From positions 1 to 64,000 of the forward strand of contig NIVC01000311.1 in the NCBI GenBank assembly GCA_002269645.1: a stretch of DNA of 64,000 bases, given 5' to 3'. Positions 40,320 through 64,000 of the stretch are shown here, piece after piece (the first letter of the stretch is position 1; every line of letters begins with the position of its first letter). A model generated the notes under the pieces. The model was given only the letters and a program-made list of their open reading frames with translations. It was not told where the DNA came from and ran no database searches. Made by a program: the position numbers and the translations under genes. The DNA is from Macrostomum lignano. Taxonomy: Eukaryota.

Positions 40320-41039
40320 AAGCTAAGTTGCATTTTTAACTAAGGTGCATAGCCAATAATATATAGTTTTTGAAGTTGTATGTATATATATTAAAAACTA
40401 TGTAAATTAAAAAAGAATCATGTTGCAAATCTTATGAATGACTTTTTGGGATCAATTTTATTTTAAATTATACTTCAAATATACTCAAGCATTTTTATTT
40501 CTATTTAAATAGAAAAAAACTAATAGTAATAGAGACAATGTATTTAAAATGATTGTCAAAGGTAGGAATAAGCTATAATGCTAAAATTAGAACTGGGAGC
40601 ACCAGATACACAGAAGTGTCAAAACAATTGAGATACTCTGCATGATGCATGTATTAAAACTTTTCAATTTTAGCAATTTTGACCCATTCCCTCTATAGAA
40701 TATATGGCTTTATTTTGGCTTAAGAAGTTAGATTATGCCTGATACCCCTTGGATAAAATAAACTTAGAGCCTGGCTGCCACTGGAAATAGTTCTCTTAGA
40801 GACCTAGTATCTATTGTCTTTTTATAGGCCTATATTACATCTTATTTGTTATGATTCCAAATAGCCTAGCCTGCCTAGGGCTAGGCTGCTTAGCTGCTGG
40901 CATAAGACAAAAATTTAATTAGGCATTATTGTGACATTGCATTATTTAAAAAGGATTCAATATTCTACAAGTTATTTTATTGCAAAAGAGCATTCTTTCG
41001 TTTTATTTGACACAAATAGCCGTTTTATTAGTAACACCT

Positions 41040-42559: not shown

Positions 42560-43325
42560 CTCCGAAATCAGTTTTCTGAGCGAAGGAAGGGCAAGCAGTC
42601 ACATACCCTCAAGTCAAGTAATTATTTTCCTTTTCCAAAACTGGCGATCCCAATGACTCGGCTGTTCTCAACGCTTAAAGCTGATGCTGTTGCTCGCATT
42701 CTTGGTTCTGCCATTGCAACAAGCTGCAGCTCAAACTCAACCGACGCTTCCTCTTGGTCAAGCCCCGCAACTTTACCATCAGTTGTAAAGCGCCTTAAGT
42801 TCTTTTTGTGTTCAGACAGACAAGTAGAAAAATACAAAAGCAAAAGCCAATAACATGTCTAAAACGTTTTCATCTTTTGCAATAACAAACAATCCTGCTC
42901 CCGGTTGGCAAGGCAGTTCGGTTATGCGGAAACGTCATCGATCACCACAAGGATCGAAACTGGGAAACTCGTCGCGACTCATGAGGATGACGGAGCTGGA
43001 CAGCAGCGTCTGCCTGAAGCCTCGCTGAAGCACGGACGGCGGCACCTGCTCAGCGGGGCAGCGGCTTCTCTGCACGGACACCAGACCGCATGCGGAGTCG
43101 TTCGACTCGACCAGAATGCGGACGGCTCTCAGGTCCGTGAAGTTTGCTCGGCCTGAGTCGAAGTCGAAGAAGAAGAGCTGCGGACCGGACGGCTGCAGCA
43201 GAACCGGGACGGGCTGTCCAAGCGACAGTCGGAAATCCGAAACGAGTTGAGCTCTAGAACTAACAGTGACGAGCATAGCCGACTGGGTAGTCACCCACAA
43301 ATACACCTGCTGCTGCTGCTGCTGC

Positions 43326-43328
<3 letters not shown>
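42560..43328. pseudogene. SID-1/SIDT-like copy A, rearranged: 5' piece on + (ATG 42653, frameshifted) and ectodomain/TM piece on - (about 42805-43328)
   Basis: The + strand MTRLFSTLK..LLAFLVLP..AAAQTQPTLPLGQA matches the N-termini of copies B/C and their upstream DNA. The - strand VYLWVTT..PSGPQLFFFDFDSGRANFTDLRAVRIL..RGFRQTLLSSS matches the B/C ectodomain and ends at a (CAG)7 tract. Confidence 0.88.
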
Positions 43329-43394
<66 letters not shown>

Positions 43395-44870
43395 TTGTGT
43401 GTGCGGTGGATTGCGCCCAGGCACCGCTAGAGGCGGTGCTTGGCCAGTTCTACCAGCCCGAGGGGGTCGGCTGCGATGCTGCTGACATCAATGGAGTGTC
43501 CTCCTAGGAAACGGAGCCTGGCACTGGCGAGGGCCGGGCAGTCGAGCCAGTGAACCAGGTCGTCGCATGGGTGACCGCAGCGTAGGCAGAAGGGATCGAC
43601 CGACGGGTCGATGACGCTGTGGTAGGCTCGAAAGAGAAGGCAGTGCCCCGAACGGATGTTGGCGGGGAGCACGGCGTCGGCTGGTTCATTGATGAGGTTC
43701 TCCTCGAGGTGACAGTTGAGATGGCTGTATGTGAGACTCGAGAGGTCGTGTGGCTGATCGGGGGGTCCTGAATGGCGTGGTGAATGACGTTCTTGGCGCT
43801 GCAAAATCTGACTGGGCAGGGAGAGAGGTCCAGCATCGTGGCCTCCTTGGCGAAGCGGTCAGCCATGCAGTTCGTTGCCGGTGACATTTTAGTGGCCGAG
43901 GACCCATTGCCAGGTGATATCGGCGATGGGCGTTGGCAACTGGGCCCTGATGTTGGGGCTGCCGCTGGCAAGCGATCGGAGGAGGGCCTGGCTATCCATG
44001 CAGATATTGGTGGCTCCCGTGGTGGCGGATTTGTTAAGTCAGCTGATGGCGAGGGCTGCGGCTTGGACCTCCTCCTCGAAGGATGTGGTGGAGGAGCGCC
44101 TCGCTGCTGGAGCGTGGCCAGAATGGTCGGGTTGTCCGGGTCGTCGACCGTGACGATGGCCGCGGCACCGCCACCGGCCGTGCCGCCGGCAGCCGAGCCG
44201 TCACAGAAGATGGTGATTGTGCCTGGAAGCAAGCGAATGATGTTGGTGGCAGCTGCCGTGCGCGCTGGGCGAGGCTCCGGCAGATCCATGCTGATGCGCA
44301 CGTCGTTGAAGCTAAAGGAGGCGTCCCACGGGGCGGGGCGCGCAGTGAAAATCGTAGCGCGCGGTGTAGTGTCCGCTTTAATGAGGGGCGTCAGTGCGCG
44401 CGCAAATGCCACCAGCTGCTTCTGCGGAGGCGGTACGGAGTGTTTCCTGTGACCGCGATGTGGCACGGGTGGGAAGCCGGAAGGCGAAGAGCCCTTTCGT
44501 AGGCGACGAGACAAATGGCGTTACTTCCGGTATGGACGGCGGAGCAGATGCCCGCTTCCAGTCTGAGAGCCTCAACAAGAGTCTTGCCGTGTTGGCCGGT
44601 AACAATGCTGAGGGCGGCGTTCTGCGCTCTTTCAAGCTGGTTGAAGGCGGAGTCAGATAGCCAGGGGTGCCAGGCCGGAGCAGCGTAGTTGATGATGCTG
44701 AGTTGCATTGCCTTGTAGATGCGAAGCAAGAGTTTCTTGCTCCACCCCCATTCCTTGGAGGCGAGACAGGCAAGCAGCCGGCAGCGGGAGGTGGACCGTT
44801 GAAAACTTCTGTTCAATGAAAGTTGCATGTGGCTTTCCAACACTGGGACCCAGAAAGAACTCCAGAAGCT
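43329..44870 (-). mobile_element. 5'-truncated, decayed RNase H-containing non-LTR retrotransposon (I/Ingi/Nimb-like group) with a (CA)n tail
   Basis: Post-RT region EWGWSKKLLLRIYKAM..YAAPAW..LERAQNAAL..EALRLEAG. RNase H motifs IFCDGSA, ICMDSQALL, QWVLGH..GNE and ADRFAKEA (with stops and frameshifts). C-terminal CLRCG..HWLDCP zinc knuckle. Stop at 43427, then (CA)n at about 43403-43329. Confidence 0.85.
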
Positions 44871-45399
44871 CCTTGCCTTACAAGTCATGTCCAAAAGTCA
44901 TGTCATGTCATGTCCAAAAGTCAGACAGACTCTTTTATTGTTTATCTCTCTCACTTGCGTATCCTTATATATGTACGTTGCTCGGCCCAAACAGTTGACT
45001 ATCATATCTATCTTGACGCGTCCCTTGGTAACCTAAACAGATTGGCTCACATAACTTGAGTCCATTCACAAAATGCGTAAACCAATTGTGACCTTTCTTT
45101 GTAATTCGTAAAACTACCAAAACTATTAAAATCTGCTTTGTGAAAACTCGGTTTCAGAAACGGACTTTGCTTCGGTTTGGCCCAGTCAGGAACTTCTAGA
45201 TGTAGAATAAAACACAGTGGCAACGATGGCAGCTTCACAAACTCTTCAATAACTTAAAACCTGTGTTATAAAGCTGAAAAACAATTGCCACATCTAAGCC
45301 ATTCTTTGTTTAAACTTGTAAAGTCGGCAAATTTTAACTCTACTTGAAAAAGTTGAGATGTAGAAAACTGATTCTCATCTCATCTCAACATCAAATTAG

Positions 45400-45587
45400 C
45401 ATCAGATTAACATTAGATTAACGTCAGATTAATATCAGGTTAGCATCAGGTTAACATCAGGTTAACATCAGATTAACATCAGGTTAACATCAGGTTAGCA
45501 TCAGGTTAACATCAGGTTAACATCAGGTTAGCATCAGGTTAACATCAAGTTAACATCCGATTAACGGCATGTTAACATCAGGTTAAC
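45400..45587. repeat. 11-bp minisatellite TTAACATCAGG
   Basis: About 16 units. Only 3-4 degenerate units occur at the paralogous site 55615-55665. Confidence 0.92.
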
Positions 45588-46496
45588 CCATCTTAAGTTT
45601 TCATTGTTTCCACACTAGCGTCAGTGAAGGACTACAATGGTCCTTGGCATCAGTACGCTAGCTTCCAGTCCGCTGATGCTACTTTTAGGCGTCCCTGATC
45701 CAACCAACCTTCAAAACCGTCGCGTTTTTTTTCTTGTTTTGTTGCAATGATCACCCCAGGGCTTGGCGCAGTAGCAATAATTCGTGGGTTCAAATTCAAT
45801 TGCTGATAAGAAAATCCGTGCGTGTCTCAAACGCGAAAATTCATGTGAGCAGCACAACAAGTTTTGACAGGCACCAACTAGCACGTCGACCACAGGTACA
45901 CCAACATCTCAATCAAATTTCCGCTTCAGATCATGCACCACTCGGGAAAATGAGTTTATTAGATAAAGCCAGGCTATTAATGTATGTGTGTGCGGTGAAT
46001 TATAGTTCTGAAAAATAGATTTTTGAAGCCCAGATGACAAAGCCTCAAAAAATTGAATTAAAAATTCTAATAATCATACAATCGTATATTTGGATACAGG
46101 AAGAAATAAATATCAGGAGTTCTAGAGGAATTTTTTCATCAAGAATGTTTTTAAAAAATTCATTTTAATAAGCGATGTCATAGGCATTGAAAGCGATGAG
46201 CTACAAATCAAACGGTTGACAATAACGTCTACTTCGGAAACCGCGAAGAAGCAATGATTAAAAAATATAATATCTAATATCATTGAATAAAAATAATTGG
46301 AGCTACTAGTAGATAAGGCGGTCGGTTTTTATTGCCCACCTCCTTGTTCAAACTAAAAAATTATGCAAATAGTCAAACTGTGAACAGCAAAATATCTCCC
46401 CAAGCACTGCTTCAAAGTTACAATCCACACATGCAGTAATGCCACTTCCGAACATAATTTCAGATCATCTTTGTTCCATGGATTAACTTCTTTGGC

Positions 46497-49282
46497 TCAG
46501 AAAATCCGGTCTGGCGCGAGCTCCTGTCGCTCTTCATCGAAGTCCATGAAGAGAACGAAGAGCAGCAGGCAGAGCAGCGCCTGCGAGCCGATCAGATGCC
46601 ACAGGTCGTGCTGGTCGAACGGCAGGCCAAGCGGATGCCACAAGCAGTCGTTGTTGGATTCTCGGGACTCAGCCGGGCTGCCTTCCCATTCGGTTGGAGG
46701 GTTGAAGAAAAAGACTACGGCCAGGATGAAAAGGCCAGCAAAAAGCAAGAATAAAATGAGTACAGCAGTTCCTCGACAACAGAGCTTGACAGACTTGACA
46801 CACAGACAGGCTTGAATATCCTTTGGTCTCGTCTTTCTGCAACACTTTCGAATGCAGTAATAAAGGAAGTATAGACTTGCAGATCCGGCAGTCACAGCCA
46901 GAAGGAAATTTGCAAATAGAAAATGTTCATGTAGAAATCCAACTAGAAAACTGGCGATTCCAGCGGCAAAGCAGACAAAAGCAGCTAAGAACGTAAGAAA
47001 ATGCTGCAACAACTGCTTTTTCCGAACGATCAAAGAAATAACAGCCAGCAGCAGCAGCACAACACCCAGCACGCTAAACACGAATTCTCGGCTAACCAAG
47101 GAAAACAGAATGCCCAGCGAGTTCACCAGCACCGTGACGCCCAACGCAACGAAGGTGACGTTGGTGACCGAGCCGGAGCTGAGGTGCCGCTTGCTGTAGA
47201 CAGCCAGGCCCAGCATGCTGGAAAGCATGATCATGAAGGTCGTGTCGAACTGGAAGGTGTTGTGCGACGGACAGATGTGGTAGCAGGCAGAGAGCACGCC
47301 CTCCATGGCCAGCGCCAGACCGGCAGCGTAGTGAGCCGAGTAGCAGCGAGGAATGACGACCGGTTTGGAGATCCGGGGCTCAGGTGGGAGCAGTTGCACA
47401 TTCTCAGTACTCGTATGATGCTCTTCTGATCCTTGAACAGTTGCCTAAAGTAGATAAGATGCAAAAGCATTTGGTAGCTTTAGTCAGCGCTGCCGGAGCG
47501 TAGAAAAAAGTTTATTTAAGGGCAACAACTTTGTTTTGAACTTCACATGTACTTTAGGGTACTTAGGCTAACCAGTGATCTCACCTGTGGCTTGTCATGG
47601 AAAAGTTGTTTCGAAAGGACAACCACCATGAACACTATTCCGGCCGTTACGTAGCCCACATTCGATACCGCATTGTTGAATGCAAAAAATGTCGTCAGCT
47701 CTGTTTTTACATAAAAGCGGCACTTGAAATTATAGTAGCACTCATCCAAGTTTCCGAAGGAGCTGATGGAGTCCTGCTGGAGCAGCACCAGCTGAAAAAC
47801 TGGTAGGCAGTAGAAGATAGCTATGGCCGTCAGCTGCATCACGAGGCTGGCATGATGCATTTTTTGCTCCCTTTCTGGCTCTCCTTGGTTGTCACCATCG
47901 TTAATCTCAGGAGGGTCGTGCTGGTGGATGTGCTCCTGTTCTTGGTTGCCAGCGTCGTTATTCTCATGACGGTCGAGTTGGTCGGTGCCGCAGCACTGGC
48001 AGTACATGCAGTAAACGCTGCAACTGCAATTGCAATCGCATCCGCAGCTTATATCACGAAAACCATGCCAAAAATTTTTTATTGAAGAACACGTTTGATC
48101 AAGGACGTTCTTAAACCCCGATTTACATCTATATCCCCCAACAACACATACAATACCGGTAAATAGCAGAATAAGACCTGAACCAAGCAAGAGAAAAAAA
48201 CAGAGTAGCTTTTTGAAAAACCAAAAAAGCAAAACAACGAAGGAAAGAGCGAAACTTATCACAGAGAAGTACAATACAAAAGCCAATATGCTCAAAGCAG
48301 TTAGTTTGTAGATTTTATCACAAAAAATAAAAGCCACAACTATCGCAGCAAGGCAGTCAACTCCGCCTAAAAGAAAAGTCAAACCAATAAGTGCCCACTC
48401 CTCCGAGTCGTGCATGGCGATCTGCTCAACCTTGATCGTGACGCTCTTGCTGGGAAACCACTGTCGCCGTTCCTGCTCCCAGTTGGCAAGGCAGTTTCGG
48501 TTGTCCGGAAACGCCGTCAGCACCACAAGGAAGCTGGGAAACTCATCGCGCCTCATCAAGATGATGGAGCTGGACAGCAGCGTCTGTCTGAAGCCTCGCT
48601 GGAGCACGGACGGCGGCACCTGATCAGCGGGGCAGCGGCTTCTCTGCACGGACACCAAACCGCATGCGGAGTCGTTCGAATCGACCAGAATGCGGACGGC
48701 TCTCAGGTCCGTGAAGTTTGCTCGGCCTGAGTCGAAATCGAAGAAGAAGAGCTGCGGACCGGACGGCTGCAGCAGAACCTGGACCGGCTGTCCAAGTGAC
48801 AGTCGGAAATTCGAAGCGAGTTGAGCTCTAGCACTCACAGTGACGAGCGCAGCTGACTCGGTAGTCACCCGCAGATACACCTGCTACTGCTGCTGCTGAT
48901 CAGGTGTCTGAGGACTCAGATGCGGTGGGCAGATGGTCCTGGTCACCGACTGGAAGCTCTCTACAGTGCTCTGTTCGCCAGTGCTGCTCACATCAACAAA
49001 GGTGTATGGCAGCGACCAGGTGTGCAGTGTCAGTTGTTGTCTGACAACTACGAGAAGTGACGTATTCGAGTAGCTGGTCGTTTCCAATCGAAGTGCAACA
49101 GTTTCATTTTCAGGCTGAGTATATTTCACAAGAACTTCAAGTGCGCTTTTAGAGCTGATGGTAAAGTTGCGGGCTTGATCAAGCGGAAGTGTCGGTTGAG
49201 TTTGAGCTGCAGCTGGTTGCGATGGCAGAACCAGAAATGCCAGCAACAGCACCAGCTTAAGCGTTGAGAACAGCCGAGTCAT
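46497..49282 (-). pseudogene. SID-1/SIDT/CHUP-1 family transmembrane protein, copy B: 2 exons, otherwise intact, with a premature TAG in the polyQ
   Basis: Exons 49282-47585 and 47444-46497 (phase 0). Signal peptide, RTICP, FYCLPVFQLV, CYYNFKC..AFNNAVSNVGY, MEGVLSACYHICP..FQFDTTFM, WEGSPAESRESN and FDQHDLWH are diagnostic of SIDT. In-frame TAG at 48884-48886. Confidence 0.88.
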
Positions 49283-49331
49283 CGGGATCACCAGTTTCTG
49301 AAAGGGGAAATGATTGCTTGACTTGAGGGTA

Positions 49332-49396
49332 CTTACTTAACTACTACTGACGGGGGGCGCAGGCGCCGCAAATAGGCCGCGAGGCCCCAATCGCAA
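49332..49396 (-). mobile_element. 65-bp retroelement 3'-end fragment upstream of copy B
   Basis: 13-bp TSD TGACTT(G/C)AGGGTA at 49319-49331 and 49397-49409. AGTAGTAGTTAAGTAAG tail. Absent at the homologous positions of copies A and C. Confidence 0.65.
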
Positions 49397-49784
49397 TGAC
49401 TTCAGGGTATGAATTGCTTGTCTACACTAGCTCAGAGAACTGATTTCGGAGAAGTTTTTCAGCCTTTTTACAGGACAGTTGTTGAGAACAAACTGATTAA
49501 AATATTCTCCATTTTTCCTGCTATCATTTCAAAGACGCAATTAACTGTCAGTTATTATTAGTTGTTACAACAATTTTATGCCAAAACACTCTCTCTGCTC
49601 CAACACCCCCTTTGCCACAAACAGCTCTTTGCCCAACACTCCCACTGACCCAACACCCCCTCTATCCCAACACCCTCATGAAAGAGCATGTAGATATTTA
49701 GGCGTTGTGAAATTTAGGCGTTGTGAAGTGCGGTGGTTTTAAGCGTTATGAAATTTAGATCTTATGAAAGCTAGAATTAGATCT

Positions 49785-50532
49785 CTGCCCCAGCACCTCC
49801 TCTGCCCCAGCACCTCCTCTGCCCCAGCACCTCCTCTGCCCCAGCACCTCCTCTGCCCCAGCACCTCCTCTGCCCCAGCACCTCCTCTGCCCCAGCACCT
49901 CCTCTGCCCCAGCACCTCCTCTGCCCCAGCACCTCCTCTGCCCCAGCACCTCCTCTGCCCCAGCACCTCCTCTGCCCCAGCACCTCCTCTGCCCCAGCAC
50001 CTCCTCTGCCCCAGCACCTCCTCTACCCCAGCACCTCCTCTGCCCCAGCACCTCCTCTGCCCCAGCACCTCCTCTGCCCCAGCACCTCCTCTACCCCAGC
50101 ACATTCTCTGCCCCAGCACCTCCTCTGCCCCAGCACCTCCTCTGCCCCAGCACCTCCTCTGCCCCAGCACCTCCTCTGCCCCAGCACCTCCTCTACCCCA
50201 GCACCTTCTCTGCCCAGCACCTCCTCTGCCCCAGCACCTCCTCTGCCCCAGCACCTCCTCTGCCCCAGCACCTCCTCTGCCCCAGCACCTTCTCTGCCCC
50301 AGCACCTCCTCTGCCCCAGCACCTCCTCTGCCCCAGCACCTCCTCTGCCCCAGCACCTTCTCTGCCCCAGCACCTTCTCTGCCCCAGCACCTCCTCTGCC
50401 CCAGCACCTCCTCTGCCCCAGCACCTCCTCTGCCCCAGCACCTTCTCTGCCCCAGCACCTCCTCTGCCCCAGCACCTCCTCTGCCCCAGCACCTCCTCTG
50501 CCCCAGCACCTTCTCTGCCCCAGCACCTTCTA
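49785..50532. repeat. 17-bp minisatellite CTCTGCCCCAGCACCTC
   Basis: About 44 near-identical units. Confidence 0.96.
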
Positions 50533-53500
50533 TGCCCCAACGGCCAACATCCGTTTAAGCGATAATGTTTTGTTCAGAATCTTCAATAGAACCTTTTGGG
50601 CTCAGCCACAGAAACGCGCAAGAAAGAGGTCCTCACTCTAAATCAGACAACTTTAATTACTTTTTTCTAGATATCCGCCTACGTGACAAAAACAATATAT
50701 AAACTGTAATACCTCTTAACACAGGTACTAAGATACGCCACAATCCGTCAAATTTAAGCGACACTGCGCAGACAACCACAGAAACAGTAGACTCTACTTT
50801 GCTTGTGACATATCCAGTTACCAGTATTCTAGTTATCTTTGCTCCGAAACGAACTGACAAAGGGTCAACTTAAAAAAATTGAAGTTGTAAGATAGCACAG
50901 ATAGATCTGCAAATCAGTGAAATATTAGGCTAAGCACTGATTGAAATACTTCGTAACTTACGAGTACATAATTCAGAGCTTCCTTAGCGAGTCGAGTTCA
51001 CACTATACAGTGGGATAAATCGAGAAAGGTAGAGTTGAGAATTCAAGTAAATGCGCTTGAAATCTTTAAAATTTTCCTCCTGGATTTTCCTCAACTAGAT
51101 AAACATTCTGAAGACTACTTGTCTGGGAAAACTACTTGTTCATCTTGCTGATTGTTCAACTTTCTCTTCTCTACAAAAACTACAATACTTTCTTATATTA
51201 TAGAATACAGCAAAAAAACATAGCACATACTCGTATTCTAAACACTGCGATGATAAAGGACAGAGCAGAAAAAAGCAACTTTCTTTAAGCACGAGACGGT
51301 AACTCAGTGGCTTGTCGCAGAGGACTGAGTTGCGCGTCGGCCAGAGCGCAGCAACTGCCCTGCTAGTTATAGCCGCTGCGGGAGGCGCTGCCACCAGCAG
51401 AATCGAGCTCAAGGGGTGGGGCGTCTGGGAAGGGGTTCCATTTTTTAGCGTCAGCAGACTTTGCTAACTCAAGGTTTGAGCTTTGGCCGCGGCGAGCAGC
51501 TTGCTTGGCTCACATTGCTTTGCTTGAGACTAATGGGCTTGAATTGTGTTTCGCCAATTTTAAGAGCTGCGTATTTGGCCGCTTGATATGGAATTGACTT
51601 AGGAGCTGGATTGCAACTTAGAGTTAGTCTTTCAAAGAACTCAGAATCACTTTGGGAACGTTGGGAACTAGGGCTTCCGCATTGAGTAGTCTCTGGTGTG
51701 TTGATCGCCGCACTCGACTCCTCGCTTGCCTCGAGCAAGCTTTCAGCTCTCGTCTGAAAAGGTAAGTTGCCACGAAAGCAAGCTTTACTGAGATAACAAG
51801 AGTTGATGAGTTGTGGATTCGAATATAAAAATAATAATTGCACCATGACGCAACCACTTTGGCGACATCGTCCCAGAACAAACGGTAAGGCAATTCTGTC
51901 CATTCCGCTGACTACTGAGCACGCACATGTACATGTGCGCAGACACTGTGCGCAGGCACGCAATAACACACACGCTCATACAAGGTGTACAGCGGTCATG
52001 ACTTTCTAATCGTCAGGTCAAGGACCACTGAAGTCACTTCGTTAAACCTTCTTAAGTAGTCCTTGCGTCAGGTATGTACACCCTCTTTGCACAAGGGGTT
52101 GACCCACAAGCCCAAAAATATGGCCGCGAAAGGAGAGAGATATGAGTGGATCAGGCGATCGGTGACAAACATTAGATCTTACTAGCAATATAGTGCCCCC
52201 TTCTATAAATAAAAAATAAGCAAGGGACTAAAATTATTTATGTGAATCTCTTATGCCTAAGCGATTCCTCCCGTAAGCCTTGACATCTTAGCAATTCCCC
52301 CCGTAAACAAGGAATTCCCTGGTTTACTGGTGCAGGACATCTCAGAAATTCCCCCAGTAAGCCTTGACATCTCAGCAATTCCCCAGTAGACATTTGACGC
52401 GTTTGACGTGACGCAACTTTTATGCTTAATATTTTTAATATAGTCATGTTTTCAGCTAGTGCAATAATCCCTTTTTCATCAAGTGTAATAATCATTTTCT
52501 CATCAAGTGTAATAATCCCTTTCTAAGTTTAGTGAAATAATCCCTTTTACAGTCATTGCATAATCCTTTTCTCAGCTAGTTAGATCTTGTTTGTTATTTT
52601 TAGTCTATAACCCTCTAGTAAAGTCCTACTTTGATCTGGAGTAGGTTAGCGGGCCCGCTTCCACTCCAGCTGGCTTGTTTTAAAAGGCCATTGTTCCGAT
52701 TGCATTTGACTATTCTATTGCTTATGAGTATGACCGATCTAGTTTTACGGCTACACTCACCATAACAATATAATCGAGGGTGGTGGGAAAAGCAAGGGCT
52801 GAGCAGTGGGAAGACTATCGGGGGAGAACTGAAAGGAAACGGAAAGGTTGCTTAACTCCATGAGACCATTGGCTGGATTGGCCAACGATTGGGAGCAGAA
52901 AGTTGAGCAACTGACTTAGGAAATTTTTAGCAAATGAAGCCATTGCCCTGGCTTGGACAGTCTCCAGTGCAGGTGCACCAAAAGCCACCTCTTTCCACAT
53001 TCCACGGACTGACTGGCAATAGGAATAGATCTTACTGGTACAGAGCCAAAACTGGGCAGCTAGAGTCTAGACAGAATTCTAACTGGAAGAGAAGGCTCAC
53101 TTTTTCGTTGGCTAAAAGCGGACACAACCGGGCCGAGTCATTTGGCTTATTTAAACGGCCTGCCTTTCCCCGTCTCAGTCCCATTGACTAAGCGGGTTTT
53201 GAGGTGGGCAGGCTCTTGACAAGGCTTGGGAGTTTTTTGCCATGAACAGGAGACAAACCCTTATGGGGGGGGGGGCGAGGAAATTTGGAGAGCCTGGTAA
53301 ATCAGTGCTGTTTCTGTGTCTGTGATGCATACAGGGTAAAAGCCTAAAGGGCCCCCACTTGAAAGCTGCACCCATGGACATTGGGTGTACCGTTGCTCGC
53401 ATGCTTTTAAGGATGCTTTTTCACCTCAAATGAAAAATGCGCTATAAAAATGCGATATGATACATTAATTATTTATCAGAGAGTATAGGCAGAGAAAAAG

Positions 53501-53541
53501 AATGGGTTACAAAATGTGCAGCTTACAGCTGCAGGTCAGGC

Positions 53542-53913
53542 GGGTCGCCATCATAAGCTCGAAAAATCACATCGTCGAAAACTGATTTAGCAGCCACCAT
53601 CACAAGCTCGAAAAGTCATAAGCTCGAAAAACACATCGTCGAAAAGTTTAGCAACCATCATCACAACCTCGAAAAGGCACAAGCTCTAACCCTAACCCCA
53701 ACCCTAACTTAACCCTAAAGGCACAAGTTCTAACCCCCGACCCTACCTAAACCCTAACACTAAGGCATAAGCTCTAACCCTAACCCTATTCGAGCTTGTA
53801 ATGGTGGTTGCTAGACTTATCGAAGATATGATTTTTCGAGCTTATGACTTTTCGAGCTTGTAATGGTGGATGCTTTTTGACGATGGAATTTTTCGAGCTT
53901 GTGATGGGCCTCC
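53542..53913. mobile_element. Foldback MITE with internal telomere-like (CCCTAA)n repeats
   Basis: GG...CC termini. Subterminal inverted repeats CCATCA(T/C)AAGCTCGAAAAAT and repeated AAGCTCGAAAA in mirrored orientation. Central CTAACC repeats. 8-bp TSD GGTCAGGC at 53534-53541 and 53914-53921. Confidence 0.75.
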
Positions 53914-54244
53914 GGTCAGGCTGTGCAACTGCAAGTAAAAAAATACAAAGAACGATTCAATTTTCCGGAGAAGAAAGCAGAATATTTTTCACGTGCTTCC
54001 TTTGCATGATCCTCAACTATTGGAAAAATGGTTGCGACGAATTCGAAGGGTAAATTACCAAAAGTTCCAACCCACGACAGAATCTCAACTGTGCTCGCTA
54101 TACTTTATTGCTACCGGTTTTCACACGTCACAAGATTCTCAATCACGTCACTGAGAAACAGCGACACTTAAACGTAAGGAGTGATACTGTGCCGTTTATA
54201 AAACAGCAACAAAAATAAAAAGCTGTCAGCCAGTCAAGCGAGTA

Positions 54245-55015
54245 ATGAGATGTAAGGACAACGTCACAGGGCACGTTTCAAGGCCTGGGCGCGAACGTAG
54301 GCCGCACCGCCGGCAGTGTCCGGGGCGCCAGCATCAACCAGCAGGCAGTCGACAAAACGCCAAGTGCGCGCCTGCCCCCGCCGGTAGGGTGCCTGCAGCG
54401 TCAGTAGCAGCACCTCCCGCTCCGGTTGCGGGCAGTTCGACTCGGCTCGGATGATACGCTGGTATGGCTTGCCAGCTGGAGTCGCCGACGGCGCAAAATT
54501 TCGCTGGGACGCGACAGGCCGGTACAGCGATAGAGTGGCGCATTGGTGACGTGCTCGAAGCCGATCTTGAAGGCGGCGCGCAGCAGGCCAGCGTGTGCCG
54601 CATCCACCAGATGTTCGAGCGAATCCGTCAGCATCCAGGTCTCGGCGTTGTACAACAGGATGTTCTCGATCGCCTCCTGGAACAACGCCGCCCTCTGGCG
54701 TTCAGGCAGGGCCTCGGACTGCAGGACAGCTTTTTTGACAGCCCTCACGGAACGGAAGGCAGCTCAGGCAAGTCCACGGCGACGTCGCAGATCCTCGCGA
54801 ACGTCAGGCACCAGACCGCCGAGGTAGACGAACTGCTGACAGTACGGAAGCTTCCTCATCTGTCCGTCAGCGCCTCGGTGTCGCCCAGCACGCATAGCAC
54901 GACGGTCTTCTGTGTGTTGACCCCAGGCCGACGCTCGCCGCAAAGCTCACCAGTCGGTCCAGCTGGCGTTGGGCGCCATCGACGGTCGGCAGTAAGAGAC
55001 TCCTGCGTCAACAAT
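54245..55015 (-). mobile_element. Decayed RTE-clade LINE fragment, same family as 8853-9746
   Basis: AVLQSEALPERQRAALFQEAIENILLYNAETWMLT..GLSRPSEILRRRRLQLASH parallels the 9 kb copy. Upstream GVNTQKTVVL motif. Confidence 0.8.
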
Positions 55016-55087
55016 GCTTTGCTTATCTATAGTTATCTAGAATTCTATGAGCTAGAGGCCTCACACCGAAGATGGCGCCATATCTAT

Positions 55088-55459
55088 CTAAACATTGGCT
55101 ATACGCCTGTCGAGAACATTATCGAACGCCTCCTCGGTAGCTGTGGCGGTGGCGGTGGCGGAGGCAGTGGCGGAGGCGGTTGTCGCTACCGTCGCCTCGT
55201 CTGGTCCGACGCGCCTGGAGTTGGCATTGTTCTCCAGCTCTTCGCTGCCCTGCGGCACCGCTTTCCTCTGGCAGTCGAAGTCCTCGTAGTCGAACTCGCG
55301 ACTGGCGTTGAACACGGAGTCCATGCCCATGAACAGGATGTAGAATCCGTAGAAGCCGATCTGCAGAGCTCCAACCAAGAAGCAAGCTGTCAGCACAGCT
55401 GCATGAAATGGGTATTCAGCCTCGCTGGTCAGCGTTGCATTGATGGCATTCAATGCCAT
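55088..55459 (-). CDS. Hypothetical 123-aa single-pass membrane protein (orphan)
   Basis: ATG-initiated ORF with a GC3-rich core like neighbouring true exons. One TM segment (AAVLTACFLVGALQIGFYGFYILFMGM), an acidic cytosolic part and a T/A-rich tail. I recognise no family. Confidence 0.45.
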   Translation of the reverse strand: MALNAINATLTSEAEYPFHAAVLTACFLVGALQIGFYGFYILFMGMDSVFNASREFDYEDFDCQRKAVPQGSEELENNANSRRVGPDEATVATTASATASATATATATEEAFDNVLDRRIANV

Positions 55460-58083
55460 GCATGCACAAGAAAATCGAATAGAAAAATCTCTGTGTGGAC
55501 CACTGGAGTTCGCGGTTGATCAGTGATTGATCAAGAAAGAAGAAGAGCGCCTTGATGATTCTGACTTAACGGCCATAGGCAATGAAGAATCGGACTTCTT
55601 GAACTTTAGGTACTGTACATCAGGTCAACATCAGATTAAAATCGGGTCAACATCAGGAAAATATCAAACATTAATATTATATTTACCCATCTTAAATACC
55701 CATCCATCGTTTCTACATAGGCGTCAGTACGCTGGCTTCCAGTCCGCTGGTGTTAGGCCTCCCTGACCCAACCAAAATTCAAAACCACTCATTATACTAA
55801 ATTGTTTTGTTGTGAATAATCACCGCAGGCCTTGACGCAATAGCCATGATTGGTGGTTCGAATTCAATTGCTGATAATAAAATCCAGCAACCCTTTCCCA
55901 GCCCCCTGCGCTCCACTGAGCTGGTAGCTACAATTGCTATAAACTCAAGAGCCCATGGATTAAATTGTTTTTGCTCCAGCAGCAGGCAGAAGTCCCGAGT
56001 CGATAGCAGTTGTTCAGTCTCGACTCTCTTCGCAAGACCACACGCAAGCTGCACTACAAAGGCTGGGCTTATATGCAAGTTCAGTTGAAAAATAGAACTT
56101 AGGCAAGTCAAACTAACTTCAACCCACGGACATTTGATTTGTTGATTACTTTGCTAAGTTTTTGCTGTTGCTAATTCCCTCGCAGGGTTCATGCCGATCG
56201 CGCAGCATCAGAAACTGCACGGCTTCAAATGGGCTGCGCCAGAGATCGGCAGGCTCCAGCTCGGTCGGATGAGCAGATAGGGCAGTTCAACAGATATAGG
56301 CTGTCGTGCGAGGCCGCGCCGCAGTCCGGGCGGTCTCAGGGTTCAGCCGTGGTAGCCACAAAGCATGGGGCTGAGGTCTGAGCGCCGCTGAGCTAGTAGG
56401 CAGCGGGTGCCGCGTGGCAACAACCGCTCGGACTCGCAGATAGCGGGGCGCAGAGTCTGAAAGGCAGTCGATGCAGTCTCACACGATAGGCGCATATTGT
56501 GCTCACCTCTCCCTGTCCCAGGCTGCCGCGACGTCAAGGACCACCCGGGGGGCGACTGGCTGTCAGGAGTCGTCAAAATGTGGTGCCGTGGAGCCGCCGG
56601 CTGTTGGAAAGTTGGTGGCAAAGATTCTCTGGGCGTCGGGAGGCCAGCAATAACTGAAGCGGCAGTTGCCTATTGTGCCGGAGGACGCGGATGGGAGCAT
56701 CTGCGTCTCGCAATGGAGGTCGGCAGAGGCCCTAAATCCCGAAATTCCCTGTCGAATGTACCGACTGTGTTGGGGTGATGACGGAATGCTTGAGAGACCA
56801 GCTGAGAATGTCTAGCATTTGAGGTTTCCCCACTGTCGAGGCTTGATCAGCGAAACGCAAGAAATTCGCATCAGGGCGTATTCATAGTCACCTGGTGCCA
56901 CCTGTTGAAGGTCCAGAAGCTCCGCCAGGGAAAAAGCCAGTGACCAACGAAGTCAGAGCTGATATATGCAGACACATGTGGTTGACATGCTGATGAAAAT
57001 TGGAGGCTTGGCAAGGCTGCACTAAGGCGCAGTGCTGATTGGTGCACAGGGGTGTACTGAATACACTGGCGCTTATGGGAAAAATCCGACTTTCTGGCAG
57101 AATTGTCGAATATATCGACGGTCCGGAGAGCTGGAGATTTGGTTCTTGTTCGAGAAGGTGCACAACAAATAGTTGATTTCTTGAATTTCGTGTGCTTGCC
57201 CCCCCTTGGTAGTTCTTGGGAAATAGCTTATTACTCCTACGGTTATTGTGGATGCTCCGACAGTGACCATGGCTTGGAGTTCTAGGATTCCAAAGCCAAC
57301 TGACTTGAATCAAAACTGGCTTTTGATTATCAGACGCGGTTCGCAAATTTGCTTAAAATTTCACCTTCAAAAAAGTGCGCGTCACGAACTCGAAAATTCA
57401 CGAGCTCTAGATTCGACAATGTGAACTTACGAGCTCACCTTTTGCCCCCCAGAATGTGAGCAGCAAAGAAATTTTTGACAAGCAGCAACCAACTCGCACG
57501 TTGACCACAGATACACTGACACCTCAATCAAGTTTACGCATCAAGTCATGCACCACTCATGGAAAAATGAGTTTATTGTATTGGTGTTGATTATAACGTG
57601 TGAGCGGTGAATAAAGTTCTGAATAAATTTCTGACGCCCAGATAACAAAGCTGGAAAATTACCATATATTTGGATGCAGGAGTAAATAAATATTGGGACT
57701 TCTACAATATTTTATAATCTAAAACGGATCCGTATTGATATAAGCTTTGCGATGCATCAAAAGCGGTGAGCTACGAATCAAACGGTTGTCAATTACGGCT
57801 AGTTCAGTAACAGCGCAGATACAAAGATTAAAAATATAATTTCTGAATATCATTGAATATGAATAATGGGAACTACTTGTGTGTAGACTGTCGGATTTTA
57901 TTGCCTACCTCTTTGATCAAACCAAAAATTTATCTAAAACTTCAAACTGTGAACAGCAAAATATCCCAAGCACTGCTTCAAAGCTACAAGCCCAGCCTAG
58001 AGCAGGCAACACATGCAGTAATGCCACTTGCGAAATCCAAAAACAATTTCAGATCAGTTTTTTCTTTTTTCAACTTCTTTGGC

Positions 58084-61000
58084 TCAGAAAATCCGGTCTG
58101 GCGCGAGCTCCTGACGCTCTTCGTCGAAGTCCATGAAGAGAACGAAGAGCAGCAGGCAGAGCAGCGCCTGCGAGCCGATCAGATGCCACAGGTCGTGCTG
58201 GTCGAACGGCAGGCCAAACAGATGCCACAAACAGTCGTTGTTGGATTCTCGGGACTCAGCCGGGCTGCCTTCCCATTCGGTTGGAGCTTTGAAGAAATAG
58301 ACTGCGGCCCAGACGGAAAAGCTGACAAAAAGCAGGAAAAAAAAGACCACAGCAGTTCCTCGGCAGCGGAGCTTTCCAAGTGGCATATTTTCCCTGGGTC
58401 TCGTCTTTCTGCAACACTTTCGAATGCAGTAATAAAGGAAGTATAGACTTGCAGATCCGGCAGTCACAGCCAGAAGGAAATTTGCAAATAGAAAATGTTC
58501 ATGTAGAAATCCAACTAGAAAACTGGCGATTCCAGCGGCAAAACAGACAAAAGCAGCTAAGAACGTAAGAAAATGCTGCAACAACTGCTTTTTCCGAACG
58601 ATCAAAGCAATAACAGCCAGCAGCAGCAGCACACCACCCAGCAGGCCAAACACGAATTTTCGGTTAATCAAGGAAAACAGAATGCCCAGCGAGTTCACCA
58701 GCACCGTGACGCCCAACGCAACGAAGGTGACGTTGGCGACCGAGCCGGAGCTGAGGTGCCGCTTGCTGTAGACAGCCAGGCCCAGCATGCTGGAAAGCAT
58801 GATCATGAAGGTCGTGTCGAACTGGAAGGTGTTGTGCGACGGGCAGATGTGGTAGCAGGCGGAGAGCACGCCCTCCATGGCCAGCGCCAGACCGGCGGCG
58901 TAGTGAGCCGAGTAGCAGCGAGGAATGACGACCGGTCTGGAGCCCTCGGGTGATGTGTGACAAGTGGCGGATTCTCAGTCGTAGTCTCTAGTGGTTCTTG
59001 ATCAGTTGGCAGCGCCGGACCGGCAGCGTAGTGAGCCGAGTAGCTGCGAGGAATGGAGATCTTTGGCTCTTGAACAGCTGCCTAAAGTAGATAAGATGCA
59101 AAAGCATTTGGTAGTTTTAGTCATTTTTAGCTTTAGTTAGTTTTAGGAGGGTAGAAAAAAGTAAACTTAAGGGCAACAACTTTGTTTTAAAGTTCACATG
59201 TATTTAGGGTAACTAGGCTAACCAGAGATCTCACCTGTGTCTGGTCATGGAAAAGTTGCTTCCAAAGGACAACTACCATGAACACTATTCCGGCCGTTAC
59301 GTAGCCCGCATTCGAAACCGCATTGTTGAATGCAAAAAATGTCGTCAGCTCTGTTTTTACATTAAAGCGGCACTTGAAATTATAGTAGCACTCATCCAAG
59401 TTTCCGACGGAGCTGATGGAGTCCTGCTGGAGCAGCACCAGCTGAAAAACTGGCAGACAGTAGAAGATGGCTAGGGCCGTCAGCTGCATCACGAGGCTGG
59501 CATGATGCATTTTTTGCTGCCTTTCTGGCTGTTCTTGGTTGCCAGCATCGTTAATCTCAGGAGGATCGGGCTGGTCGTTGCCAGCATTGATATTCACAGG
59601 AGGATCGGGCTGGTCGTTGCCAGCATTGATATTCACAGGAGGATCGGGCTGGTCGTTACCAGCATTGATATTCATAGGAGGATCGGGCTGGTCGTTGCCA
59701 GCATTGATATTCACAGGAAGATCGGGCTGGTCGTTGCCAGCATTGATATTCACAGGAGGATCGGGCTGGTCGTTGCCAGCATTGATATTCACAGGAGGAT
59801 CGGGCTGGTCGTTACCAGCATTGATATTCATAGGAGGATCGGGCTGGTCGTTGCCAGCATTGATATTCACAGGAAGATCGGGCTGGTCGTTGCCAGCATT
59901 GATATTCACAGGAAGATCGGGCTGGTCGTTGCCAGAATTGATATTCACAGGAAGATCGGGCTGGTCGTTGCCAGCATTGATATTCACAGGAGGATCGGAC
60001 TGGTCGTTGCCAGAATTGATATTCACAGGAGGATCGGGCTGGTCGTTGCCAGCATTGATATTCACAGGAGGATCGGGCTGGTCGTTGCCAGCATTGATAT
60101 TCACAGGAGGATCGGGCTGGTCGTTGCCAGCATTGATATTCACAGGAGGATCGGGCTGGTCGTTTCCAGCATTGATATTCACAGGAGGATCGGGCTGGTC
60201 GTTGCCAGCATTGATATTCACAGGAGGATCGGGCTGGTCGTTGCCAGCATTGATATTCACAGGAGGATCGGGCTGGTCGTTGCCAGCATTGATATTCACA
60301 GGAGGATCGGACTGGTCGTTGCCAGCATTGATATTCACAGGAGGATCGGGCTGGTCGTTGCCAGCATTGATATTCACAGGAGGATCGGGCTGGTCGTTGC
60401 CAGCATTGATATTCACAGGAGGATCGGGCTGGTCGTTGCCAGCATTGATATTCACAGGAGGATCGGGCTGGTCGTTGCCAGCATTGATATTCACAGGAGG
60501 ATCGGGCTGGTCGTTGCCAGCATTGATATTCACAGGAGGATCGGGCTGGTCGTTGCCAGCATTGATATTCACAGGAGGATCGGGCTGGTCGTTTCCAGCA
60601 TTGATATTCACAGGAGGATCGGGCTGGTCGTTGCCAGCATTGATATTCACAGGAGGATCGGGCTGGTCGTTGCCAGCATTGATATTCACAGGAGGATCGG
60701 GCTGGTCGTTGCCAGCATTGATATTCACAGGAGGATCGGACTGGTCGTTGCCAGCATTGATATTCACAGGAGGATCGGGCTGGTCGTTGCCAGCATTGAT
60801 ATTCACAGGAGGATCGGGCTGGTCGTTGCCAGCATCGTTAATCTCAGGAGGATCGGGCTGGTCGTTGCCAGCATTGATATTCACAGGAGGATCGGGCTGG
60901 TCGTTGCCAGCATTGATATTCACAGGAGGATCGGACTGGTCGTTGCCAGCATTGATATTCACAGGAGGATCGGGCTGGTCGTTGCCAGCATTGATATTCA

Positions 61001-62212
61001 TAGGAGGATCGGGCTGGTCGTTGCCAGCATTGATATTCACAGGAGGATCGGACTGGTCGTTGCCAGCATTGATATTCACAGGAGGATCGGGCTGGTCGTT
61101 GCCAGCATTGATATTCACAGGAAGATCGGGCTGGTCGTTGCCAGCATTGATATTCACAGGAGGATCGGGCTGGTCGTTGCCAGCATTGATATTCACAGGA
61201 GGATCGGGCTGGTCGTTGCCAGCATTGATATTCACAGGAGGATCGGACTGGTCGTTGCCAGCATTGATATTCACAGGAGGATCGGGCTGGTCGTTGCCAG
61301 CATTGATATTCACAGGAGGATCGGGCTGGTCGTTGCCGCAGCACTGGAATTGCATGCAGTACAAGCTGAAACTGCAATTGCAATCGCATCCGCAGCCACA
61401 AGCAATAACATGACGAAAGTCTTCTTCATCTTTAATTTGATCAAACACTGTTAACGAATTCCCACACAGGTATCCAATAACAGCAACTACAAGCAGGATA
61501 AGACCTAAAACAAGCAAGATAACAAAACAGAGTAGCTTTTTGAAAAACCAAAGAAGCAGAACAACGAAGGAAAGAGCGAAACTTATCACAGAGAAGTAGA
61601 AAGATACAAAAGCCAATATGCTCAAAATAGTAAGTTTGCAGCTTTGATCATAAAAAATAAAAGCCACAAGTATCGCCACAGCGCAGTCTATAACGCCTAA
61701 AAGAAAAGTCAAACCAACAAGTGCCCACTCTGCCGAGTCGGGCATGGCGATCTGCTCAACCTTGATCGTGACGCTCTTGCTGGGAAACCACTGTCGCCGT
61801 TCCTGCTCCCAGTTGGCAAGGCAGTTTCGGTTGTCCGGAAACGCCGTCAGCACCACAAGGAAGCTGGAATTAAACTCGTCACGCCTCATCAAGATGACGG
61901 AGCTGGACAGCAGCGTCTGTCTGAAGCCTCGCTGGAGCACGGACGGCGGCACCTGATCAGCGGGGCAGCGGCTTCTCTGCACGGACACCAAACCGCATGC
62001 GGAGTCGTTCGACTCGACCAGAATGCGGACGGCTCTCAGTTCCGTGAAGTTTGCTCGGCCTGAGTCGAAGTCGAAGAAGAAGAGCTGCGGACCGGACGGC
62101 TGCAGCAGAACCTGGACCGGCTCTCCAAGCGACAGTCGAAAATTCGAAGCGAGTTGAGCTCTAGCACTCACAGTGACGAGCGCAGCTGACTCGGTAGTCA
62201 CCCGCAGATACA

Positions 62213-62261
<49 letters not shown>

Positions 62262-62645
62262 ATCAGGTGTCTGAGTACTCAAATGCGGTGGGCAGATGGT
62301 CCTGGTCACCGACTGGAAGCTCTCTACAGCGCTCTGTTCGCCAGTGCTGCTCACATCAACAAAGGTGTAAGGCAACAACCAGGTGTGCAGTGTCAGTTGC
62401 TGCCTGACAACTACAAGAAGTGACGCATTCGAGTAGCTGGTCGTCTCCAATCGAAGAGCTACAGTTTCATTTCCAGGCTGAGTATATTTCACAAGAACTT
62501 CGAGTGCACGTTTAGAGCTGATGGTAAAGTTGCGGGCTTGACCAAGCGGAAGTGTCGGTTGAGTTTGAGCTGCAGCTGGTTGCGATGGCAGAACCAGGAA
62601 TGCCAGCAACAGCACCAGCCTAAGCGTTGAGAACAGCCGAGTCAT
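58084..62645 (-). CDS. SID-1/SIDT/CHUP-1 family transmembrane protein, copy C: 2 exons, giant repeat loop, one apparent 1-bp frameshift in exon 2
   Basis: Exons 62645-59235 (1137 codons, no stop) and 59081-58084. Same SIDT signatures as copy B, including SACYHICP and DQHDLWH. Adding one C at the 58948-58950 run restores the frame (about 1469 aa). Confidence 0.87.
59538..61337 (-). repeat. Coding 39-bp minisatellite (13-aa AGNDQPDPPVNIN), about 46 units
   Basis: In frame within exon 1 of copy C. The flanks align to copy B, which has only about one related unit. Confidence 0.96.
62214..62261 (-). repeat. (CAG)16 polyQ tract in the copy C ectodomain
   Basis: 48-nt pure CTG run on the + strand. 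Confidence 0.95.
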
Positions 62646-64000
62646 TGGGATCGCCAGTTTCTGAAAGGAGAGAATGATTTGTTAAAGGTATGAATTGCTT
62701 GCCGTCACAAGTTTAGAGAGTTGATTTTGGATAAGTTTTTCTGCCTTTCAACAGGACAATTGGTCAGAGTGAAACTGACTGAATATTTTCAATTTTTCCT
62801 GCTAACTCATTTTAAAGACGCAATTAACTATCAGTTATTATAACTAAAATTTTGTGCCCAACACCCCCTCTACCCTAACACCATTCTGCCCCAACGCCAC
62901 CTCTGCCCCAACGCTCCCTCTGATCTAACACCCCCTTTGCCCCTGCATCTCCACTGCCCCAACATTCGTTCGAACGATAATTAAGGTTTTGTTCAAATTT
63001 TCGATAGAACGTTTTGGTCTCAGTCACAGTATCGCGCAAGAGAGTGATCCTTATTTTAAGTCATGGCATTAGCAGACAACTTTAATTGCTTTTTCTAGAG
63101 ATATATGCGCCTACTTGTCAAAAATAACATATCAACTGTAATACCTCTTAACAAAGATACAGTAATATACTAAGTAGACACGTCACAACGCGTCAAATTT
63201 AAGCGAAACCGCGCAGACAAGAGTAAATCTACTTTTCCATTACTTTAATTGCGAGTGACATGTCTAGTTATCAGTATTCTATTATCTGTGCTACGAAACC
63301 AGCTGACAAAGGTGCAAATTAAAAATTCTAAGTTGTAAGTTATCACAGATTGACGTGCAATCAGTGAATTATTAGGCTAAGCACTGATGGAAATACGTAT
63401 CTCGTAACTTACATAATGCAGACCTTCTTAGCGAGTCGAGTTCGCAAAATATACTGGCATAATTCGAGAAAGGTAGAATCTTGAAAGCAAGGGAATGCGC
63501 TTCGTTTTTTATGCTGAATATAATAAATAAACTATTGAATAGATAAGCATTCTGAGAGTCAAGCTCTAAAATCACTTGTAGCTACAGCTTTTTGCAGTGT
63601 GCACAGGAAGTACACTTCACGGATTGGCTGTCAATAGGGACAGAACTTACTAGTAACAAAACATCTGCACCTCTCACACTGAAGATGGCGCCATATCTAG
63701 CTAAACACATCGCAAGTAACTTTATCATTTGCTAACTGGACTGCAGCTATCTGCAGGTAAAAATCATCCATTTAGTTGGCTAAGTAAGAAGGGCTGTGGA
63801 CTAATGACGGCAACAAACTTATATAGCCTACACCTTTGGAATGTTATTTCTCTATGTCAATTAAACAAGCAACAAGTAGAGTTTTACTTCGCTGGCAATA
63901 TTTGTTTTAGTTACTGGGTCGGATTAATTCTGGAAAAGTGAATTTTCATCGCATCCGGAGTTGCCAAGCCTGAAGTGAGATGGATCGATAAAGAAGCACG

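Follow-up and report, generated by a model that had tools for sequence, protein, structure and literature searches.

Tandem SIDT-type genes at the locus

The 64,000-nt stretch of the Macrostomum lignano genome analysed here (contig NIVC01000311.1, positions 1 to 64,000, forward strand; hereafter the window) carries coding sequence of the SID-1/SIDT family (PF13965) at three places between 42.6 and 62.6 kb. These copies, designated A, B and C, were located by Pfam scans of six-frame open reading frames (ORFs) of the 41-64 kb region. B and C lie on the minus strand, and A is split into one piece on the plus strand and one on the minus strand. A tblastn search of the whole window with the reconstructed B protein found no further SID-1-family copies. 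All three window copies are disrupted, and intact relatives occur on the reference contigs. The reference copies used for comparison are L002 on NIVC01000736 (GenBank protein P0002) and L001 (P0003), L003a and L003b (P0001) on NIVC01000319; in pairwise comparisons the window copies B and C are called W_B and W_C.

Exon 1 of B (47585..49282, minus strand, ATG at 49282) was delineated from the gene model, Pfam, the alignment to human SIDT1 and hydropathy. It encodes a signal peptide, the ectodomain, transmembrane segment (TM) 1 (48323-48397, minus strand) and an extra hydrophobic hairpin (48131-48304, minus strand), both seen in the hydropathy profile, a cysteine cluster evident from the sequence (47987-48046, minus strand), a short acidic loop and TM2-TM3. 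A 140-nt GT..AG intron (47445..47584) follows, with the donor CAG/GTGAGA and the acceptor TTTAG/G, both in phase 0. Exon 2 (46497..47444) encodes TM4-TM11, including the motifs SACYH (47277-47291) and DQHDLWH (46596-46616), and ends with the stop codon at 46497-46499. The frame is broken by a premature TAG (48884..48886, minus strand), where a CAG has changed to TAG inside a polyglutamine tract; the other copies have CAG at this site, among them the near-identical reference counterpart L002, in which 13 CAG/Gln codons run uninterrupted.

Gene C has the same layout. Its exon 1 (59235..62645, minus strand, start at 62645), defined from ORFs, Pfam and repeat finding, encodes a signal peptide, the ectodomain with a (CAG)16 tract (62214-62261), TM1 (61653-61727) and the extra hairpin (61467-61634), again by hydropathy, the cysteine cluster (61335-61400), a tandem repeat and TM2-TM3. 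This in-frame 39-bp repeat (59538..61337, minus strand; 46.2 copies, 97% match) encodes 13-amino-acid (aa) units, of which 44 regular ones were counted, the commonest being NDQPDPPVNINAG. It sits in a TM1-TM2 loop of 606 aa with a net charge of -97. The polyglutamine tract between the two halves of the ectodomain is a second length-variable coding microsatellite and ranges from 6 to 16 codons among the copies (sites 62214-62261, 48881-48898 and homologues).

The 153-nt intron of C (59082..59234, minus strand), as set by the canonical acceptor that is conserved among the copies, has the same junction in P0003. Comparison with the B-type copies places a lesion zone at the start of exon 2 (58945..59081, minus strand). 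A 66-nt insertion at ~58999-59068, in which part of the downstream ...IPRSYSAHYAAGPAL segment is duplicated, and the loss of 1 nt within 58945-58955 put exon 2 from 59081 out of frame with the conserved acceptor. Translation from 59081 would end after 99 out-of-frame codons, and neither the zinc site nor any of TM4-TM11 would be part of the product. Exon 2 still has its conserved frame open (58084..58944, minus strand; TM4-TM11, with SACYH at 58849-58863 and DQHDLWH at 58183-58203); a weaker acceptor, GAG/GGC, with an exon start at 58944, could possibly restore it. The initial annotation of this stretch had described three paralogues, each altered differently, by an inverted fragment, a single nonsense codon and a giant repeat loop. 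Every one of these elements is present in the sequence, and the frameshift at the start of exon 2 in C had been overlooked.

Relic A is inverted in part relative to B and C. Piece 1 (42604..42804, plus strand) covers the 5' flank, the start codon and the signal-peptide region; it shows 88% identity in blastn to 49331-49130 and 62669-62493 in reverse orientation and is decayed, an extra base breaking its frame. Piece 2 (42893..43328, minus strand), recognised by blastn and Pfam, corresponds to the central ectodomain (B aa 135-251) and is 91% identical to B and C (blastn), its PF13965 match (E 1e-6, 28.0 bits) falling just under the cut-off of 28.7. It terminates in (CTG)n followed by (GT)37 and adjoins a repeat element. 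The relic is identical to a copy at L002 16090-16440 (NIVC01000736), and its synonymous divergence (dS) from every live copy, 0.144, exceeds that among the live copies. A is an old rearranged relic, and its extra divergence would be expected if homogenisation or constraint acts on the live copies and spares the dead ones.

Beside the relic, 43329-45587 comprises the (GT)37 tract and then the repeat element, which has no Pfam match. A copy of this element with 98.7-99.8% identity occurs on another contig, at L003 15084-17098, and the insertion of a young transposable element beside the relic is the probable explanation. An 11-bp repeat occurs 18 times at 45387-45587.

B and C differ at exactly eight of the first 128 aa, as the initial annotation had counted, and far more in the loop after TM1 and in one late cytosolic-loop/TM stretch, a pattern seen both in the pairwise comparison and in the sliding identity profile. 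Their coding DNA is 88-94% identical, their loops are unrelated, and their flanks are 74-82% identical or unalignable (blastn). Because flanks and loops have diverged in this way, and because an independent assembly also shows three tandem copies, B and C are true tandem paralogues; the reading of them as uncollapsed haplotypes of one locus, which the initial annotation had named as a possible refutation of a tandem array, was rejected.

A 17-bp tandem repeat, CTCTGCCCCAGCACCTC (44.6 copies, 97% match), occupies 49783-50539, ~0.5 kb upstream of B, and C has a degenerate six-copy counterpart at the corresponding upstream position (62857-62964). The repeat therefore belonged to the duplicated unit.

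Copies on the reference contigs and GenBank annotation

Close protein matches to the array are limited to three M. lignano GenBank proteins. The window is 95-100% identical to NIVC01000736 at 37.1-47.9 kb and 93-97% identical to NIVC01000319 at 55.1-64 kb, and is thus a mosaic of two reference contigs. It is probably a homeologue or haplotype of loci that the reference already contains, in keeping with the hidden polyploidy reported for M. lignano, in which duplicated blocks of at least 95% identity amount to 180 Mb (PMC5730564).

Three further copies, all in the same orientation, are found on NIVC01000319. L001 is C-type; it has 11.2 repeat copies (46.2 in window C) and shares both exon 2 indels of C. 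These C-type indels lie outside homopolymers and are identical in the two assemblies. L003b is intact; its 39-bp unit, which is homologous to the C-type one but differs from it, keeps the same register and occurs 12 times. L003a (L003 2501-5228, unannotated) is full-length with a frameshift in the loop beside an A10 run, which may be a homopolymer assembly error and not a true lesion. NIVC01000736 carries L002, an intact two-exon B-type gene.

The GenBank models were built from StringTie/TACO RNA-seq assemblies (PMC5730564), and P0001, P0002 and P0003 all use exactly the predicted intron junction; in P0002 it reads ...HDKPQ/ATVQGSEE..., which matches the B intron. Transcription of the family and its two-exon structure are therefore supported, in agreement with the single coding intron of the initial annotation. 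The apparent lack of an intron in P0001, suggested by a single tblastn high-scoring segment pair, was rejected, as the intron is a multiple of 3 nt and reads through.

Two of the three GenBank models are truncated or frameshifted. P0003 ends in a frameshifted tail. The P0002 model (Mlig014992g1, L002 10001-12750) has 7 Gln where the genome has 13, and omits 37 nt without GT..AG near the 3' end, which creates a false frameshifted tail; a real C-terminal frameshift was rejected, the genome being intact there. Cross-mapping of reads between paralogues is probably the source of this error. The UniRef label 'DUF4203' for P0002 was not reproduced. A literature search with four gene IDs found no mention of them.

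Zinc site, ectodomain and TM1-TM2 loop

Membership of the SID-1/SIDT family is firm: PF13965 matches in the B and C exons score 121-155 bits against the cut-off of 28.7 (E 1e-35 to 1e-45). Among solved structures, the array is best matched by human SIDT1 and SIDT2 (8woq, 7y63; E 1e-56 and 5e-53). The alignment spans the ectodomain, TM2-TM6 and TM9-TM11, although identity is only ~30-35%. The SIDT1 zinc ligands His563, Asp574, His791 and His795, as well as Ser559 and Glu555, are all matched in the alignment. The disulfide pairs C479-C565 and C485-C782 have their counterparts in the motifs ECYYNFKC, CYHIC and NNDC of B and C (for the roles of these residues in SIDT1, see PMC11137008). Zinc-site and disulfide residues are invariant in 6/6 copies, and SACYH, QFDT and DQHDLWH are kept in all; the SACYH and DxHDxWH residues had already been noted in B and C from the sequence. 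The predicted function is that of a SIDT-type zinc lipid hydrolase or ligand binder.

The N-terminus is hydrophobic, as expected of a signal peptide (hydropathy). B aa 51-284 aligns with SIDT1 65-294 (E 5e-13), and AlphaFold2 places beta strands in the ectodomain, at low confidence. The AlphaFold2 run on P0001 (14-row alignment, mean predicted local distance difference test score (pLDDT) 47, predicted template modelling score 0.33) was used for secondary structure alone.

The TM1-TM2 loop sets the array apart from SIDT1/2, in which it is cytosolic, disordered and RNA-binding through an Arg-rich motif (PMC11137008). In the array it includes, after TM1, an extra hydrophobic stretch of 58-61 residues, in the hydropathy profile two TM segments split by KK. 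A cluster of 10 cysteines in 20 residues (CGCDCNCSCSVYCMYCQCCG) comes next, and an acidic Asn/Pro/Asp-rich segment is last in the loop. This segment is present once or twice in B-type copies and amplified in the C-type and P0001-type ones. The hydropathy profile shows the expected TM segments in addition to the extra stretch, which would imply 13 TM as compared with 11; two such extra helices would leave the remaining topology unchanged. AlphaFold2 predicts helix across the extra loop segment in a model that is poor overall. No credible Pfam domain was found in the inserted loop at E values up to 10. Loss of the Arg-rich loop would argue against RNA binding on the cytosolic side. The array further differs from SIDT1/2 in the polyglutamine tract between the ectodomain halves, in having a single coding intron, and in being tandem and partly pseudogenised.

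Place in the family and intron structure

In an exhaustive search, matches to P0001 show a gap from ~77% to 35% identity, and HMMER against 1.84 billion representatives returned only two sibling clusters above 50% identity. Word-index homologue searches with the TM core and the ectodomain gave metagenome fragments or nothing, and these searches also missed the known M. lignano members. The next relative is M. lignano Mlig027904 (P0012; PAA53786.1 / PAA66649.1; E 9e-82, 35% identity). In a neighbour-joining tree built from 34 sequences over 723 columns, the array clade and its grouping with Mlig027904, on a long branch, each have 100% bootstrap support (100 replicates). P0019 and P0023, the canonical SIDT1-like proteins of M. 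lignano, sit with other bilaterian SIDTs, as do two nematode SIDT-like proteins, apart from the array. The identity gap and the phylogeny agree on a lineage-specific clade, as the initial annotation had proposed.

Mlig027904, the sister of the array, is likewise species-specific in the database and intron-poor. It differs in being intronless, with a single uninterrupted 795-codon ORF, and in its short (~50 aa) acidic TM1-TM2 loop, which has no hairpin, Cys cluster or repeat. No second SID-1-family gene was called within 6 kb on either side of it. The canonical P0019 gene (Mlig033109/024104/001878), of the same species and family, also has two coding exons, separated by a single 958-nt coding intron after KIYQTR. 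This intron lies ~40 aa after the MEGVLSxCYH motif, whereas that of the array lies ~30 aa before it. The canonical SIDT1-like genes have a long Ser/Ala/Thr-rich loop and group with the bilaterian SIDTs, not with the array. Since all three M. lignano lineages are intron-poor, this trait gives no information particular to the array.

Caenorhabditis elegans SID-1 (8hip, 8xbs) is matched by the array only in its C-terminal part (E 1e-19, compared with 1e-56 for SIDT1), so that the array genes do not qualify as SID-1 orthologues. SID-1 and CHUP-1/TAG-130 belong to the same Pfam family and share the zinc-site core. The likeness of the array to CHUP-1 comes from the literature on flatworm SID-like proteins: PMC5594548 places these proteins nearer CHUP-1. 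It also counts (Table S5) seven SID-1-like models in M. lignano and three in Schmidtea; the parasitic flatworms considered here mostly have one, Echinostoma caproni two. Neither the array nor its loop is described there.

Tribolium SilB is among the matches to the array. The insect SID-1-like sets (Tribolium Sid-1-related A-C) are independent, lineage-specific SIDT-like duplications with an unproven role in RNA interference (RNAi). They are not known to form tandem arrays with hypervariable loop insertions or coding minisatellites.

Evolution of the copies

Pairwise dS and the ratio of non-synonymous to synonymous divergence (dN/dS) were estimated by the Nei-Gojobori method for six copies (15 pairwise comparisons). 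Overall dS among copies is ~0.05-0.15; the array copies are young. In the ectodomain, dS is 0.05-0.12 and dN/dS 0.20-0.56, mostly 0.2-0.4; in the TM2-TM3 block, dS is 0.04-0.16 and dN/dS 0.05-0.57, mostly 0.1-0.3. These substitution counts indicate purifying selection on the ectodomain and TM core. Exon 2 gives 0.55-0.84 between different gene types, because one cytosolic-loop/TM stretch has been replaced, and 0.21-0.23 in the near-allelic pairs W_B/L002 and W_C/L001 (binomial P 0.004 and 0.012, respectively). For W_C/L001 the conserved exon 2 frame has a dN/dS of 0.23, with seven synonymous and five non-synonymous differences.

The loop from TM1 to the Cys cluster behaves differently. Between different gene types its dS is 0.13-0.40 and its dN/dS 0.75-1.84; the near-allelic W_C and L001 show only three differences there. 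Sliding identity is 91-98% among all copies in the ectodomain and 45-90% in the loop. The rapid evolution expected by the initial annotation is thus borne out for the loop. Positive selection is not claimed, as the single-pair value of 1.84 is not significant and dS is raised as well.

Downstream of 47.75 kb, exon 2 included, W_B matches L002 at 97-100% identity. A simple chimera of L002 and another copy was not adopted for W_B; uniformly homogenised ectodomains and a sharply divergent loop are seen instead. The pattern, as read from these comparisons, is one of birth-and-death with gene conversion: same-orientation paralogues stand beside relics and pseudogenes, relic A is old and unhomogenised, and copy number, repeat number and structure differ between assemblies. 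The window holds more than 20 minisatellites with periods of 11-45 bp, and since it is so rich in them, the 39-bp coding expansions fit a genome-wide minisatellite tendency.

Interpretation

We regard the locus, with reasonable though not high confidence, as a M. lignano-specific, recently amplified tandem array of divergent SIDT/CHUP-1-type (CREST-fold) genes under birth-and-death. The TM1-TM2 loop is its hotspot, having gained ~58 hydrophobic residues, 10 cysteines and an expanding acidic 13-aa unit. The underlying 39-bp minisatellite has expanded to different lengths in different copies, and individual copies have been disabled repeatedly: A by rearrangement, B by a nonsense codon and C by a shared frameshift. 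Intact members may work like SIDT1/2: a double beta-sandwich ectodomain, extracellular or luminal, would bind nucleic acid or sterol as its ligand, and the core within the membrane would act as a zinc-dependent lipid hydrolase. In place of the Arg-rich RNA-binding loop there would be a membrane hairpin, a Cys string, probably acylated or metal-binding, and a disordered polyanionic cytosolic tail. The repeat expansions would most simply be a tolerated by-product of the genome's minisatellite tendency.

Several points weigh against this picture. The window is without any intact copy (B has its stop, C its frameshift), and the reference copy L003a is also frameshifted, though an assembly error at its A10 run is plausible. 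Because loop dS is raised, the high dN/dS there may stem from old, divergent segments having been exchanged and not from positive selection. Purifying selection on the out-of-frame exon 2 of C is read from only 12 substitutions, which gene conversion could also explain. The structure model, with its pLDDT of 47, is too poor to confirm a 13-TM topology, and an acidic loop without the Arg-rich RNA-binding motif of SIDT1/2 does not imply RNA transport. The function and localisation proposed for the array proteins are predictions from sequence, and the support for transcription applies to the family as a whole.

The whole subfamily could instead be non-functional debris of a burst of segmental duplication that is decaying neutrally. 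The disruption of every window copy, the C-type frameshift in two assemblies and that in L003a would suit this, as would a loop dN/dS of ~1 and a repeat expansion in line with the genome-wide minisatellite load. We nevertheless find it unlikely. Ectodomain and core dN/dS of 0.1-0.4 across the 15 comparisons, zinc-site and disulfide cysteines invariant in all six copies, and intact two-exon genes in the reference (L002, L003b/P0001) with RNA-seq-derived models speak for maintenance, and the one truly dead copy, relic A, is visibly more diverged.

Also unlikely, and marginally less probable than neutral decay, is a retrogene origin, in which a SIDT gene with many exons was retrotransposed and its intronless copy later gained one intron; the initial annotation had called the subfamily possibly retrogene-derived. 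The 795-codon ORF of the sister Mlig027904 and the differing intron position of the canonical gene could be taken in its favour. However, the canonical SIDT1-like gene P0019 itself has one coding intron and the sister none, so that two exons do not distinguish the array or mark a retrogene, and intron poverty needs no retroposition. Moreover, the species averages 4.9 introns per gene (PMC5730564), which makes zero or one unremarkable. Array genes have an intron and their presumptive parent type has only one, and neither fits a processed retrogene. A cursory look found no poly(A) remnant in ~400 nt downstream of P0012, nor one downstream of B (no search for target-site duplications was made). 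The retrogene reading is thus without support.

It is doubtful that the array proteins are primarily importers of double-stranded RNA (dsRNA) for RNAi by soaking, with a loop diversifying in conflict with viruses or transposons. They do belong to the SID-1 family with a conserved ectodomain, the route of dsRNA entry into M. lignano cells has not been described (PMC11075559), and loop dN/dS reaches 1.84 (W_B vs L002). Against this, the proteins are far closer to SIDT1/2 than to SID-1, the flatworm SID-like proteins are reported to lie nearer CHUP-1 (PMC5594548), and the loop is polyanionic and not Arg-rich. The canonical SIDT1-like P0019 and P0023 are more obvious candidates. The excess of dN over dS is not significant (P ~0.06, an estimate from counts without a formal test), and dS is raised with it. 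For the link to environmental RNAi, RNA uptake or sterol scavenging drawn in the initial annotation we found no evidence in the array.

We give as little weight to a bolder version, in which intact members would be a neofunctionalised 13-TM SIDT variant that has swapped the RNA-binding loop for a module diversifying under selection (a membrane hairpin, a palmitoylated or metal-binding Cys string and a polyanionic tail of polymorphic length), with the C-type a truncated decoy or regulator. If this were true, the selection on the module might come from a conflict with viruses or mobile RNA, or the uptake of environmental RNA or of sterols might have been tuned in this way, and the frameshifted C-type product would be a truncated ectodomain-plus-loop protein.

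An assembly artefact, with haplotypes or homeologues placed in tandem and lesions that are consensus errors, might be expected from the hidden polyploidy of the species, whose duplicated blocks of at least 95% identity add up to 180 Mb (PMC5730564), from a window that is a mosaic of two contigs and from an L003a frameshift at an A10 homopolymer, but it is very improbable given the 6-12% coding divergence of B and C, their divergent or unalignable flanks, entirely different loops and late-TM segments, three same-orientation copies on one contig of an independent assembly, and C-type indels outside homopolymers that are identical in two assemblies.

The array represents a known family in a structurally altered, lineage-specific form, and its products are already listed in databases as hypothetical proteins. 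Models of SID-1-like genes had also been counted in M. lignano before, and the initial view of the locus as the best candidate for a new system was too strong, all three window copies being disrupted. Its value is limited by the inferred function, by the canonical SIDT1-like genes being better candidates for RNA uptake and by the lack of intact window copies. M. lignano is, however, a regeneration and stem-cell model for which soaking RNAi is the main genetic tool, and an expanded, altered SID-1/SIDT branch complicates statements that 'SID-1 is present' in this species. The array also offers a natural test case for the function of the TM1-TM2 loop, a poorly understood part of SIDT proteins, and the locus shows how annotation is misled where tandem duplication and gene conversion meet coding minisatellites and polyploid redundancy.

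Other features of the window

Tandem repeats are prominent in the rest of the window. An 11-bp satellite, GACAGGGGAGA, fills 225-3179 with ~280 copies and shows extreme strand asymmetry (GC skew 0.5-0.67, AT skew 0.6-0.8). More than 20 separate minisatellite arrays with periods of 17-45 bp and up to 105 copies lie between 11.9 and 38.7 kb and take up much of the window. This load fits the 15% simple and tandem repeat content reported for M. lignano.

An ORF at 11447-12496 (plus strand) contains three mitochondrial-carrier repeats (PF00153, E 3e-29) and, within it, a 27-bp tandem repeat (11904-12323). Another, at 24625-25638 (plus strand), has a weak, sub-threshold match (E 2e-4) to the C-terminal end of Sec1-family proteins and may be an exon of a Sec1/Munc18-like gene. 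An ankyrin-repeat gene occupies 35356-41044 (ORF 38740-39414, minus strand), with 27- and 34-bp tandem repeats upstream of and inside it. It is syntenic with the ankyrin gene beside the B-type gene on NIVC01000736 (L002 17.6-22.5 kb).

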